From Adineta vaga (Eukaryota > Animalia > Rotifera): a stretch of 64,000 bases of DNA. The notes under the pieces were generated by a model. That model ran no database searches, had not been told where the DNA came from, and saw only the letters and a list, made by a program, of their open reading frames with translations. Below, one piece after another: positions 4,053-10,071 of the stretch; the stretch's first letter is position 1; each line of letters starts with the position of its first letter. The position numbers and the translations under genes were made by a program. The DNA lies in the NCBI GenBank assembly GCA_021613535.1, contig CP075492.1, positions 9,176,001-9,240,000 of the forward strand. The letters are read 5' to 3'.

Positions 4053-6353
4053 TTCAATCTACAAAGATCAATTGTATGCATATAAAAACATAGATATCAA
4101 AATAAATCCTTTCTCTAGATACGATGATAAGAAATCAGCGAAGCATACAGTAATGTAAATATATTTCATTATCAATTAAGGAAAAAAAAATTTTCTTAAA
4201 TATTTCTCGCTGACTTCCATCATAGTACTTAAATCTAATGTTGATTGGTATCGAGAATTTCCATTTCACTAATGAATACAATATCTGTACTTCGTATAAT
4301 ATATATATTATATCGTTAGATTATAGAATTTGTCGACAAGTGATCATTGAAATTATTTTGAAATAAAAATCAATAACTGGTTAAGTTTACATTTGACACA
4401 GATCTAAATAAGAATCTCTGTTCGATTTCTAAATTATATTTGATCAATAATTTTTATCTTTGGATCAAAATGCACTTATACTCGAATGAATGATATATAT
4501 GTTTTGCATCGAGGCACTTTTTTTATTTTGATATTTATCTAAAGAATAAAGGCTTGTCACTTGAAATTATGTCATAATATAATTAATGGTTGATGAGATA
4601 TTCATCTATCTAGTTATGTACTTTCCGCATCAATAAGGTCTGCTTTTGACCGGGTGAAAAATCCTGAAACATTCCCGATATTCATCATTTAAAAAGGGTA
4701 ATGTTTTTATGATTTTATTATCGATGATCTAGAAATAATTGTTTTTAATTAGAACGAATGTTTTCGTCATCACTTTCATCAATTGTGACTACTTATATCT
4801 ATTTCACTTCGCAATCATAAATTAATTCAGTGTCGTAATATAAAACATTTTAAAATATAATCTATTACTTTATGTTTATCTTTCGTGAACAAAACAGAAG
4901 TAAAGACATTGACTATCATAAAGATAAGTAACATTTTTCGAAGACTAATAATGAAAATATTATCCATAAATAACAGATATTTGATCGATATATCTAATCT
5001 CGGATACGCTCTGAATAACTTAAACATCTGATAAAAAAAAAGTTTCTTTGTCATTGAAAGTAAAGAAATGTATTAATCGAAAAACAGTTTAGAACATTTC
5101 CAGTACAGTTTATAATACTGATTAGACTATTATTTATTATCATACTTAGCGATAAATCTAGTTAAGGTAATATCTCATTTCGAGCACTGCATTACCTGAC
5201 AATATCATGACGAAGGTCATATATCTAGAGAAGAAAATATTTTGATTAACGATGAATGTATAATGTTTTTCGATTCATATCGATGTTGCTTGTGTTTCTT
5301 CGCAATCACTTTGAGATAATATTGAAAAAATATTTTCCGGTTCATAAATTTCATTAATTAGTTTCTGCATAATTAATAACGTCAAGTAAATAGCCGAAAC
5401 ATTGATTGAATGAATAATAAATATGCCCTTTAAGTCTAAGTGTTGCATATTTCGAGAAAACCCTAGAATATCTCAGTTTTTCGCAGATAGAAAATAGAAT
5501 AATTGTACTCAGCAAAGCTTCGCATTCGTTCGCGGAAGCGCAAATGTCGTGCCACTTTCTAATTTTCAGTTAACAGCCAAATAAGCTTGAATAGTCCGTT
5601 TTATCTTTCATCTTGTCCATTATATCGTTTATTTTATCACCAACTAAAATAAACATGATGCATTTTTTGCCTATCCTAAATTTTGGTGAAACTATGAGTT
5701 AGGGTAATCTAGTATGATTCATTAACTAGAAATAATGATAGAGTAACTTATTGTATTGAATTTTTTCGCGTTGAAAGGTAGTTGATGTATTTATTTCAAT
5801 TCGCACGTTAACGACTATAACTAGATGTACTTCTCTTTTAAATGTAAGCTCTTTATCTATAATTTATGTTTAAATAAAAGTTAGAAACGATGATTGATTG
5901 ATATAGTTACGAAAGATAAAACGTTTTTCCGATAGACGTCATTTATCGCTCGTATCATCATCATGAATCCTCGTATTTTGTTAGTTGAAAGATTCTATGG
6001 GACTAACCGATTTGCCATAGATCATGATTAATTCTCATAAGTTTATCAAAATACAACAGACTTCAATGAATTTCGAAATATCTCGTGACCTACCTTTGTC
6101 CTTTTTTTGATTATGCACTCGAAAATACATAGCAAATCAAATATATTTTCTTCTATGTCAGCTTTGGATGTATAACACATCAAAATATGAATGAAATCAA
6201 AACGTGATTGCATTGACTATTCATCTCGATTTGACGAAGAACGTTTGAGTAGAAGAATACTTGCTTTGCATAAATGATGTTTATAGTTCTATCCTATTGA
6301 TTCATTTTCTCTTTTTTAGGTGATTTCTCGAAAATCATTGTTCTTATTTGTTT

Positions 6354-9281
6354 ATGGCAACTACAAAACTTTCATTTGACACGGAGATGGATCTCATAGA
6401 GGTTGAAGAAGATGTTGAACCATCATTGTAAGTACGATTTTTATTTCTACAATAACTTTTGTAAGACAAAATCTAAAAGAAATCGTATTCATCGATGCTT
6501 TAATGAGACTACAAAGCTTAAAACAATAAGAAGTTCATTTAGTGATCAAGTAGATATATATTTATATACTGCTTAACTGACAGAAAGCAAGGCTAAACAA
6601 ACTGTTATGAAACATCGATTTATCGTCATATGCCGAAGATTAGTTACGAATAAAGGAATATATGAGTTAAAATTGGATTGAAATTTGTATCATTTTCTTA
6701 AATATACTTTTGTATCATTTGATAATGTTATAAGCGTACCTTTCGCTTCTTTCTTTCAATAAGTAATTTAAGCAGATATTAAATTATTGCTCTTTCGAAA
6801 TAATCTATTATTTTCATTTCATAGTTTGGAAAGACGATCAGGTGGATTAATCATCTGTGTGATATTTTTAATCGTCTTCTCTGTGTGCATTGTTTTGATT
6901 CCATCATTGCTATCAGTATATCTTTCTGATATTAGCGTCGCTGTCAAGAAGTCTAATGCAACTGGTATTTTCTTACGTTCCACTATATTACATGTATTCT
7001 CCTTTTTATTTCTTTTCATTACAGCTGGAGATCCATGGTCATTGAAATATCTGACAAATCTAACAAGTCTTCACTCAATTGTTACTCGTGGTATTTCACC
7101 ATACGACAAATCATCATTGGGTAGATCGGTAAGTAAATTGTTTACACACGGTTGACAACAGAAAACAAGATCTGGTCATTATTATTTGAGATAACTAGAT
7201 AAAATGACGCATGGAGAATGAATGAATTATTTGTCTGATATCACCTGAAGTGACAGATAAAAAACTTTCAATGTGTTTCATGGATTTATTTCAACTAAAA
7301 TGTCTCATACTGCATAAAAAAGGTCAAAACAACAGTTAATTATTCGGAAAATTACTTTTGAATAAAAATCATGTTTTAAAATTTGAGTTTTTTAGAGCTG
7401 ATCAATTTGAACATTTCTTAAATGAAATCAATGATTATTCTTCTTTTCATTTAGTTTGATAGATCTATGTCATTCAGATCCGGTACAGTAATAATTTTTA
7501 CATGTACCTTAGATGTAGAAGACGATCGGAAACGTCGTCGTCGTCGTCAGTAGGTTATCGTTATTTTATAATAATAAAGATTATATTAACTATCATTATT
7601 TTCATTTACTGACAGAGATATAACAGAGAAATCTTCCGCAATTTATATGAATCTTATTGTACGTGCACAATATCCTCAACAATGTGCTGGTGTTGTTCAA
7701 TGTCAAAAATCGTTTCAACAGCAGGTTTTTTCAAAGTTTATGAGTACTCGAACGCTTTCTCTCTCGCCAGAATTAATCAATGGTCGAATTCTACCTATTG
7801 AACTTAAACTTGTGACTCTCATTGAAAATTATGGTACGTATGAATGTAAAAGTACTCTTACGGTTAGAAAAAAAATTGTATAATTAGACATTATTGAATG
7901 TTCTGTTGAGTCATGTTAAAAAAAACTATCTATACAATGGAAGAGAAATTCTAGAGGAGCTTAGTGAATTTGAAATCGAGAAACTATATAAAAATCGTTT
8001 TTTCTAGTGTCCACGACAGCTGAAGTGCAATCATTATCTACCGAAACAAGTTCAACGCTAACCAGCACCATATCGACTACAATTACAACTACAACAACAA
8101 GCACAACTTCAACGTCAACAACAAGCACAACTTCAACGTCAACAACAAGCACAAGCACAACATCAACCACAACTGATACAACGACAGACACAACGACAGA
8201 CACAACGACAGACACGACAACGGATACAACAACGGATACAACAACGGATACAACAACAGACACAACAACAGATACGACAAACTATATGGCAGGAGGCACG
8301 ACAGGTAGGATAAGAACAATTAATAGTCGGTAGATTATGCTCATATTGGCTGAGGGTGTGGATTTACATGAGGCTATAATAACTGCTTTCGCTCTCACCC
8401 ATCTCCACACAGTCCAGAAGAGATGTTAATCAGTTAGAATTCTTTTCCATTCAATGTAACAAGTTTTTTTTTCGTAGGACCTACATGTTATAATGGCAAA
8501 GATAAAGTTCGATTAATAGATGGAAATGAACGTTCAATAGAACATTTACAAATTGGTGATCGTATTTGGACAATAAGTGCAAATGGTAAATTCTTAGTAG
8601 AAGATGAAATTATTTTAATGATGCATAATGGAACAAATATGCCAGGTATTTGATTTGATTTAATTCTGAAAAACTAACATTTTAAAAATAAATTTCTAGC
8701 ATTATTTTATACATTTGAAACAATCGATGGTAATAACATTAGTATAACAGAACGACATTATATTCCAGTTTATGATGAAAATTTGAAAGAAATTCGAATT
8801 CTACGTGCATCATTCGTTAAACGAGAACATTATTTAATAATGAATAATAAAAAAATCACAATTAAAAATATTACAATAAATACACAAATTGGTTTTTATG
8901 CTCCACTAACACTTTCTGGTTATCTAACAGTGAATAATATTTCAACAGTAGTCTTTTCAGATTGGTAAGCATCCTCTTGCTTCTGGAGTTCTGAATAATC
9001 AATCGATAATTTGTTTCTCTTTTTTAAGGTATAAAGTGTCATCTGAAACCATTCAAATTGTCTTTCTTCCAATTCGTATTTATTATCATTTAACTCGATG
9101 GATTTTTGGTAAGAATTATATTCCATTTAAAGAAATAACAGAAGGAGTTCATCCAATATCTCGATTTTATTCCGAAGATCTTGTCAAATTTCGATTTTTT
9201 ATTGAAATTCCTGTATATGTATACTTCACAATTATTCTTATTGCATCATTCTCATATTTACAAAAACATTCAATGAAATAA
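6354..9281 (+). CDS. Hedgehog-related Hog (Hint + SRR-like) domain protein with N-terminal signal anchor, polybasic site and Thr-rich stalk, about 537 aa
   Basis: Nine phase-consistent exons: 6354-6427, 6825-6964, 7025-7128, 7455-7549, 7616-7833, 8008-8304, 8478-8645, 8700-8964, 9029-9281. Hint motifs: CYNGKDKVRLIDGNERSIEHLQIGDRI, ITERH (TxxH), GFYAPLTLSGYLTVNN. SRR-like IVFLPIR...GVHP follows. Confidence 0.85.
8085..8281 (+). repeat. Coding tandem repeat: TSTTS units, then about 9 x 12-nt units encoding TTTD (mucin-like stalk)
   Basis: Repeats such as ACAACGACAGAC and ACAACGGATACA are read directly in the sequence. Confidence 0.9.
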
Positions 9282-10071
9282 AATTTCATTAATAACTTAT
9301 TCTTTTCAATAAATATATATATATATATATTCTTCTACGTGTATGTTCATTTTCAAAAATCGAAAATTTAGTTATTGCGATGAATAATCTCACGCAATCA
9401 AGTGATTAAGGTAATTATTCGATAGAAAATATATTTAAAAAAAACGTCAATTCGTTTTTTTCTTCTTCTTCTTCAAGCCACATTGTGTTATCATTACTGA
9501 AATATTTCTAGCACCTATATATGATTTCTTTATGAATGAATTTGTCACTCGTATTAAAGTGTTATTTATATTGAATATCATTCTTCATCCAATGTTGAAC
9601 ATGTTCATCTCTGCATGTGTTTGTTCTTTAATCATTGATTCGGAAGAATATAAAAATGAATGAATATTCTCTCTTTCTTTTCACCTTATTATTGTAATAA
9701 CAAATTTTATTGCTCAAACATTCAGATTCATGTTTTAATTTGATTGTATTTGCCATTCAACCTGATCTATATCATTTCTTTCTCTCTTTCGTTCTCAACA
9801 GGTGAAAAGTCTACAATACCCATGAGGTGGTCTTAACATTAAAAAAAGAAGGAAAGGAAAAAGAACGAACAAACAAATTGATGAATGAAAAGAAAAGAAA
9901 AGAAGCATTACTCCGATTGGATAAAACAAACGAGAAAAAAATTCACATTAATAACACCAATCAAATTGACGTCTTCTTTCCTTCTTTCTTTCTTCTTCTA
10001 TACTCTTCAACTCAGGTGTTACAATTCAATGTGTCGATAAGTTTATTACATTACAAACAAACAAAACGTCA

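Follow-up and report, generated by a model that had tools for sequence, protein, structure and literature searches.

A predicted type II membrane protein of the rotifer Adineta vaga combining a SEA-like carrier module with a Hog domain

A stretch of 64,000 nucleotides from the rotifer Adineta vaga (NCBI GenBank assembly GCA_021613535.1, contig CP075492.1, positions 9,176,001 to 9,240,000 of the forward strand; hereafter the window, with coordinates counted from its first letter) contains a transcribed nine-exon gene, at 6354-9281 on the plus strand, that joins a membrane-anchored N-terminal module to a Hog domain. Hog domains are the one known machinery that ester-links a lipid to the C-terminus of a protein, and little is known of their roles beyond Hedgehog. 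As judged by profile matches and conserved residues, the Hog domain of the window's gene is genuine, with an intact nucleophile cysteine and TxxH motif. The combination of parts is new and the parts are known, the gene being a member of a large rotifer Hog family. The product is probably a type II surface protein with a self-removing Hog domain, a convertase-cut SEA-like domain and a threonine-rich stalk, acting as a surface mucin or in the extracellular matrix.

The exon structure was reconstructed from splice sites and then compared with transcript data. All introns begin with GT and end with AG in compatible phases. The exons add up to 1614 nt and encode 537 residues before the terminal stop codon, the frame being uninterrupted, in a window of about 30% G+C. 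An initial annotation, made from the sequence alone, had likewise spliced nine exons in phase into one protein; its order of parts holds in a single transcribed gene, and the polybasic run, the Hint cysteine and the TERH motif lie exactly where it had placed them (Table 1). Transcript evidence was drawn from Logan contigs aligned with 6100-9500 of the window, originating from four runs (X1, X2, X5 and X13) of three studies, in which all eight introns are spliced out at the predicted positions. The joint 8304/8478, which connects the threonine-rich exon to the first Hint exon, was seen in four of four runs. Contigs begin near 6318 and form an overlap chain linking exons 1 to 9, composed of exons 1-5 with 63 nt of exon 6 (X1), exons 6-7 (X5) and exons 7-9 (X5); none spans the whole transcript, as contig assembly is interrupted by the exon 6 repeat. 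The run type "RNA" is a guessed label, yet contigs from which GT..AG introns have been removed must derive from spliced RNA. Two separate genes at 6354-7833 and 8478-9281, an outcome that the initial annotation had raised against itself, are ruled out by the spliced joints connecting both parts. Eight polymorphisms were found in the transcripts, six of them synonymous (in the ectodomain and Hog domain) and two non-synonymous, both in the N-terminal cytosolic tail.

Three features of the transcript data were observed besides the main splice pattern. Intron 2 (6965-7024) is 60 nt long, in frame and stop-free, so that an open reading frame (6787-7155) runs across it; its retention would insert 20 residues after the transmembrane (TM) helix, and it is removed in all contigs seen. 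A contig of the X1 RNA run omits 65 nt within the 12/24-nt repeat of threonine codons, with 5 other letters between (8124-8190; 8076-8280), which is either strain variation in repeat length or an assembly collapse. Finally, a high-depth contig (146, 110 and 90 in X1, X2 and X13, respectively) touches the window only at 8603-8625 and 9069-9091 (joint 8625>9069, TA..TT) and then diverges from it; this contig probably represents the transcript of a paralogue with stronger expression and with short conserved words in common with this gene.

All sequence searches were run exon by exon, and the joined exons served only to check the reading frame, to compute hydropathy and to assign the codon effects of polymorphisms. 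Exons 7 and 8 match the Pfam Hint profile (PF01079) colinearly, exon 7 with 27.6 bits (E 2.6e-6) and exon 8 with 41.8 bits (E 1.2e-10; cut-off 29.7), and the whole locus searched in six frames gives 64.9 bits (E 3.3e-16), which bears out the Hint assignment made initially. Pfam returned no match above noise on exons 1-6 and 9, and no HH_signal (Hedge) match on any exon of the gene, in agreement with the claim that the payload is not a Hedge domain. In a PDB sequence search, exon 7 aligned from Cys1 of the Drosophila Hedgehog C-terminal domain Hh-C (6TYY, 1AT0), placing the nucleophile at Cys313, while exon 8 gave no match. The top match of exon 7 was 6TYY, a D46H mutant, which ranks best because His359 stands where Hedgehog has Asp46 as its general base. 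The D303H (D46H) Hedgehog enzyme retains its structure and activity and has a widened substrate tolerance (PMC9163320), suggesting that His359 is a variant of the general base rather than a loss. T382 lies 23 residues beyond His359, the spacing expected for TxxH. Exon 9 encodes a motif-K-like F.P.R.YY, the pattern P.R.YY..W.FG..Y.P....HP and a hydrophobic end (F510-L531; Kyte-Doolittle maximum 2.03); the sterol- or adduct-recognition region (SRR/ARR) has no profile of its own.

The same domain is widespread in the rotifer genome, whose assembly comprises six pieces totalling 100.8 Mb. A six-frame Pfam search found 54 Hint matches, counted as about 39 Hog loci, and no HH_signal match at E <0.1 in the whole genome, an exon-by-exon result that leaves the absence of Hedge unproven. 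Judged by these matches, the genome looks like those of nematodes, with loss of Hedgehog and expansion of Hog. The Hog domain of the window groups with about nine loci, each encoding Hog in three exons, as one sub-family, the closest of which, at C2:15.877 Mb, is 76%, 70% and 48% identical for exons 7, 8 and 9, respectively; exon 7 identity among the sub-family paralogues spans 42-77%. Cys1 is kept in 9 of 10 sub-family loci, namely all those where the exon-7 region can be aligned, histidine stands at the general-base position in 8 of 9 members, and [TS]xxH is present in every member with an alignable region. Also kept are GDR[IV]W, VNNISTSV[FY]S, the P.R.YY..W.FG..Y.P....HP pattern of the tail, and a hydrophobic C-terminal end followed by basic residues. 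The retention of these motifs down to 42% exon 7 identity argues for selection on both catalysis and the tail. In a heuristic scan, most sub-family Hog domains were preceded by a TM-like open frame together with T/S-rich sequence or with arrayed EGF-like cysteine exons.

At C3:7016000-7023000, on the minus strand, a sub-family Hog domain lies behind about 20 consecutive small exons, each encoding one 6-Cys EGF-like unit, and a TM-like frame. Two near-duplicate Hog loci, C3:17135000-17142000 and C3:18691500-18698700, are located 1.56 Mb apart; in the latter, the alignment of exon 8 is confined to its last third and a stop lies in the exon-9 region, suggesting that it may be a decaying copy.

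The N-terminal portion of the protein begins with a predicted cytosolic tail, with nine D/E and three K/R among its first 32 residues, followed by a TM segment (L33-L54; 6847-6912) that is preceded by RR, followed by D, and reaches a Kyte-Doolittle maximum of 3.4 over 19 residues. This pattern of basic residues before and acidic residues after the helix is common to all paralogues, and indicates a type II (N-in) orientation, which agrees with the extracellular nature of the paralogue heads. A cleavable signal peptide in place of the anchor was rejected from the hydropathy profile, in which the hydrophobic stretch begins only at residue 33, behind the acidic tail. The stalk in front of the Hog domain is 99 residues long, with 58 T, 16 S and 9 D (84% T+S+D), is encoded by 12/24-nt tandem repeats, and is presumably O-glycosylated.

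Between anchor and stalk, exons 3-5 are predicted, with moderate confidence, to form one divergent SEA-like domain. In the folding alignments, exons 3 and 5 of the window were entered as separate rows, and the exon 2 and exon 4 rows were excluded. Two independent AF2 models, of the Adineta ricciae homologues P0032:44-214 (pLDDT 74.4, pTM 0.65) and P0001:62-212 (pLDDT 78.6, pTM 0.68), both show a single domain, built as strand-helix-strand, a long low-confidence loop containing R-x-R-R, and strand-helix-strand(s). In an exhaustive VIA-align comparison with 48,161 PDB chains, the zebrafish Gpr126 SEA domain was the best match of both models (Z 7.9 and 7.3), with a MUC16-type SEA domain next in both cases (Z 7.3 and 6.9); the MUC16 SEA and the TMPRSS6 SEA region (Z 5.6-6.1 for the latter) followed lower down for both, and the membrane-adjacent domains of Trop2 and PCDH15 also matched both models at lower Z. 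A language-model search placed three SEA clusters on top (0.85-0.83), a score at the level of a lead. R-x-R-R sits in the strand 2-3 loop of both models, and a GSVVV motif is absent. MUC1, Notch2 and human GPR126 are cut within this loop, by autoproteolysis or by furin, and the cut halves remain associated until force parts them (PMC6954182). By analogy with these proteins, a cut at the basic site would leave the two halves associated rather than free a small domain at once. Thus, the domain of about 75 residues that was initially read from exon 5 as a free cysteine-containing payload appears, on these models, to be the C-terminal half of a fold completed by exons 3-4.

This module also occurs apart from Hog domains. 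The genome has two paralogues of exon 5, one at C5:6.25 Mb that is 45% identical and one at C6:12.21 Mb that is 38% identical, with no Hint domain within several kb of either. In their gene models, which are heuristic, both have the same order of parts and the same intron positions, namely a TM exon, an exon-3 segment, an exon that ends in RYRR or RFRR ahead of a split Gln codon, an exon-5 segment and a threonine-rich stalk. The exon-3 segment, with the motif W..[KR]YLTNLT..H...SP[YF]DKS.LGR, is 64-65% identical to that of these paralogues, and exon 3 identity to paralogues and Adineta ricciae proteins together is 56-65%. The basic site that the initial annotation had noted is conserved as R-x-R-R: R-x-R-R-Q occurs at the same place in six of six full-length members, making RKRRRRR of the window a candidate proprotein-convertase site, and convertase P domains (P_proprotein) are encoded in the genome. 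The codon for the glutamine behind R-x-R-R is split by an intron.

An exhaustive search of 1.84 billion representatives with an exon-5 profile built from three segments returned only 31 proteins. Three of them (P0001, P0002 and P0003) are complete or partial proteins of A. ricciae, the species with the nearest proteins outside this genome. The others (P0004-P0031) are open frames of about exon size in JGI and ENA environmental metagenomes; they read into what is apparently the same donor site (..ENY G[EK]Y..), and are presumably bdelloid environmental DNA called as prokaryote-style genes. A homologue search with region 1-215 of P0001 returned the query itself only, and one with the alignment profile A4 returned two A. 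ricciae proteins only, its candidate list having been swamped, probably by the poly-Ala-Pro stalk of the first row. In a tree of exon 5 (72 columns), which is weakly resolved and too short to date the fusion, the window's exon 5 forms a separate, long branch and falls outside an Adineta clade that includes the C6 orthologue pair. By sequence comparison, anchor, SEA-like domain and stalk constitute a separate family, an exchangeable carrier for varied heads. The N-terminal part, initially read as a payload, is thus not specific to Hog, as the same module carries Laminin_G_3, NHL, Apple or Cys-rich heads elsewhere (Table 1). Since each half belongs to its own family, the window's gene is best described as a fusion of the carrier module with Hog.

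Table 1. Exons of the Hog gene and other members of the carrier-module family
Feature	Location	Strand	Description
Exon 1	6354..6427	+	Start codon, acidic N-terminal tail; joint 6427/6825 in X1, X2, X13
Exon 2	6825..6964	+	Predicted signal-anchor TM helix, NAT sequon; joint 6964/7025 seen
Exon 3	7025..7128	+	Predicted strand 1 and helix 1 of SEA-like fold; best-conserved part of the N-terminal module
Exon 4	7455..7549	+	Predicted strand 2 of SEA-like fold, then polybasic RKRRRRR (7527-7547)
Exon 5	7616..7833	+	Predicted C-terminal half of SEA-like fold (strand 3, helix 2, strand 4/5); conserved YP..C.....C pair
Exon 6	8008..8304	+	Thr/Ser/Asp-rich stalk; joints 7833/8008 and 8304/8478 seen
Exon 7	8478..8645	+	Hint start; Cys313 (8486-8488), His359 (8624-8626); Pfam Hint 12-59
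Exon 8	8700..8964	+	Hint core; T382-E-R-H385 (8747-8758); Pfam Hint 67-161
Exon 9	9029..9281	+	Adduct-recognition-region-like tail, hydrophobic F510-L531 (9195-9260), basic residues, stop
C5 paralogue	C5:6247000-6256999, positions 5158-7906	+	Laminin_G_3 head, E 1.6e-22
C6 paralogue	C6:12208000-12217999, positions 7337-5547	-	Cys-rich head
A. ricciae P0001			Cys-rich head
A. ricciae P0002			NHL repeats
A. ricciae P0003			Short; clusters with longer P0032 (poly-Ala-Pro stalk; head named Apple domain-containing in UniRef)

The gene structure, its transcription, the domain identities and the family relations are directly supported, and a sequence of events for the protein was inferred from them. 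The protein would insert with its N-terminus in the cytosol and its ectodomain in the lumen of the endoplasmic reticulum (ER), as suggested by the positive-inside charges and the extracellular-type heads of the paralogues, and its C-terminal hydrophobic segment would probably keep the Hog tail at the membrane. Given the conserved catalytic residues, Cys313 is expected to attack the carbonyl of Thr312, and the resulting thioester would be resolved by a His359-assisted nucleophile, which may be a sterol, another lipid or water. The Hog domain would thereby be removed, and the stalk might retain an adduct at its distal end. The invariance of the R-x-R-R motif and its place in the fold suggest that a furin-type convertase would then cut after RKRRRRR in the Golgi, and the halves of the cut SEA-like domain would probably stay together until pulled apart, like those of other cleaved SEA domains. 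The likely product would be a sheddable, glycosylated surface tether or a matrix (glycocalyx) protein. It belongs to a modular family in which adhesion-type heads are carried by the other members.

Several observations weigh against this reading. The full-length transcript was inferred from overlapping short contigs rather than from a single molecule. Within the Hog domain, the equivalent of Hedgehog Cys143 is missing (the motif-J region ends ..FSD), a residue that forms a branched intermediate according to a 2025 paper (PMC12054796), and the residue before Cys1 is Thr312 rather than Gly. The structural assignment was made on models of two A. ricciae homologues, 36-62% identical per exon, and not of the window's joined sequence; the SEA matches are intermixed with RAMP and other ferredoxin-like folds within 1 Z, at middling values (Z <8). 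Foldseek against the PDB with the model of the N-terminal module gave nothing below E 1e-3, only generic ferredoxin-like matches, a shape search of the ESM atlas stayed at TM <0.5, and Pfam SEA (PF01390) matched neither exons 3-5 nor the N-terminal modules of the A. ricciae homologues. The glutamine of R-x-R-R-Q may owe part of its conservation to the splice site. Finally, the exon-5 segment and Hint occur together in none of the 31 proteins, so that conservation of the fusion is unproven.

One alternative, put forward initially, is that furin and Hint cuts free a small cysteine domain on a mucin stalk, lipidated at its C-terminus, as a diffusible or short-range ligand of a new hedgehog-like signalling system. 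Such a ligand appears improbable. It would fit the presence and conservation of both cleavage motifs, the abundance of Hog-processed products expected from about 39 Hog loci without detectable Hedge, and the proposal that shed fragments of cleaved SEA proteins act as ligands (PMC6954182); however, exon 5 is modelled as half a fold rather than as a domain of its own, and the N-terminal module bears unrelated adhesion-type heads in paralogues and hence behaves as a carrier rather than a ligand. No observation points to a receptor or pathway or otherwise supports a new signalling system, and the Hedgehog-related proteins of nematodes have proved to be components of the apical matrix (PMC10793445). 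Considering this matrix role in nematodes together with the adhesion-type paralogue heads, a matrix or glycocalyx role is more economical than a new signalling pathway. A different use of the same two cuts is likewise doubtful, namely a tether whose glycosylated stalk would become attached at its far end, through Hog chemistry, to a lipid of the cell's own membrane or of an adjacent one, and in which the furin-cut SEA-like domain would be a force-breakable joint at the near end. If true, this would amount to a mechanically releasable lipid-anchored mucin or to a force-released, hedgehog-like lipidated ligand, a mechanism that is not described for any Hog protein.

It is also conceivable, if unlikely, that the Hog domain only hydrolyses or never cuts, with no adduct transferred; it would then be a pro-domain that can be removed, a device for quality control, or a head that stays embedded in the membrane. 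The missing Cys143 equivalent, the histidine in place of Asp as general base and the threonine at position -1 would all be understandable on these terms, as would a tail that has no Pfam match and differs from the Hedgehog sterol-recognition region; cholesterol addition is unsettled for the Hog domains of nematodes as well (PMC2362128). Against this stand the retention of Cys1, [TS]xxH, the histidine (8 of 9) and the tail motifs among paralogues of as little as 42% exon 7 identity, the activity of the D46H enzyme (PMC9163320), and the fact that the motif-J cysteine is also missing in non-metazoan Hog domains, being Ser, Thr or Asp in those of moss and red algae (PMC2362128). That the gene is a young exon-shuffling chimera, transcribed yet idle and with no selected function, is very improbable: its frame of 537 codons is intact over nine exons and correctly spliced in three studies, six of its eight transcript polymorphisms are synonymous, and the long branch of exon 5, in a weakly resolved tree, suggests a lineage that is probably not very recent, even though the N-terminal module and the Hog domain are each closer to different genes and protein searches found no orthologous fusion elsewhere. 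The self-removing Hog domain on a convertase-cut, stalked surface protein remains the preferred reading.

Compared with Hedgehog proper, the rotifer protein has in common the sequence match to the Hint fold, Cys1, TxxH and a hydrophobic tail past Hint, and differs in lacking HH_signal and a Cys143 equivalent and in having His for Asp46 and Thr for Gly at position -1; its tail is not recognizably the sterol-recognition region of Hedgehog. A stalk and Hog domain with a natural histidine general base offer a compact natural substrate for the question of which adducts non-Hedgehog Hog domains attach. The Warthog, Groundhog and Quahog proteins of nematodes resemble the rotifer case in being a lineage-specific Hog expansion with non-Hedge N-termini, no Hedge having been detected in the rotifer, and probably also in the link to the apical extracellular matrix known from the nematode proteins (PMC10793445). 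In contrast to these families, no exon of the gene matches Wart, Ground or Qua, the rotifer proteins are apparently membrane-anchored, at many loci in combination with a stalk or an EGF array, and the expansion is independent. Rotifer Hog proteins would thus represent a second independent animal expansion beside that of nematodes, in a lineage undescribed for Hog domains in the searchable literature, which neither links rotifers to Hog domains nor mentions "Hog domain" and "SEA domain" together.

The closest described architectures are Hoglet of the choanoflagellate Monosiga ovata and T-hog of the nematode Xiphinema, which likewise lack Hedge and have a long Thr(/Ser)-rich stretch directly before Hog (PMC2362128). 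The initial claim of an architecture without described relatives therefore stands for the combination of anchor, SEA-like domain and Hog, and falls for that of a threonine-rich stretch with Hog; sister genes in which anchor, stalk and Hog appear together are also frequent in this genome. Hoglet and T-hog start with a signal peptide, and Hoglet also has a cellulose-binding-like domain (PMC2362128), whereas the rotifer protein has, by hydropathy, an internal signal anchor behind a 32-residue tail and a hydrophobic end of the Hog tail, together with a predicted SEA-like domain containing a convertase site. That domain recalls MUC1 (cut by autoproteolysis), the Notch2 heterodimerisation domain and human GPR126 (cut by furin) in being, as modelled, a juxtamembrane ferredoxin-like sandwich beside a mucin-like stalk, with a candidate site in the strand 2-3 loop; it departs from cleaved SEA domains in the absence of a Pfam SEA match and of GSVVV, in its type II orientation and in its middling scores. 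Type II transmembrane serine proteases, such as TMPRSS6 and enteropeptidase, offer an analogy, with no evidence of common descent, in their cytosolic tail, signal anchor, membrane-next SEA domain and further ectodomains, the head being Hog (LamG, NHL or Apple in paralogues) instead of a protease. Relative to all of these systems, the rotifer gene adds a putatively cleavable SEA-like module on a Hog protein, an independent family in which that module bears exchangeable heads, a natural histidine at the general-base position, and a conserved hydrophobic end of the Hog tail.

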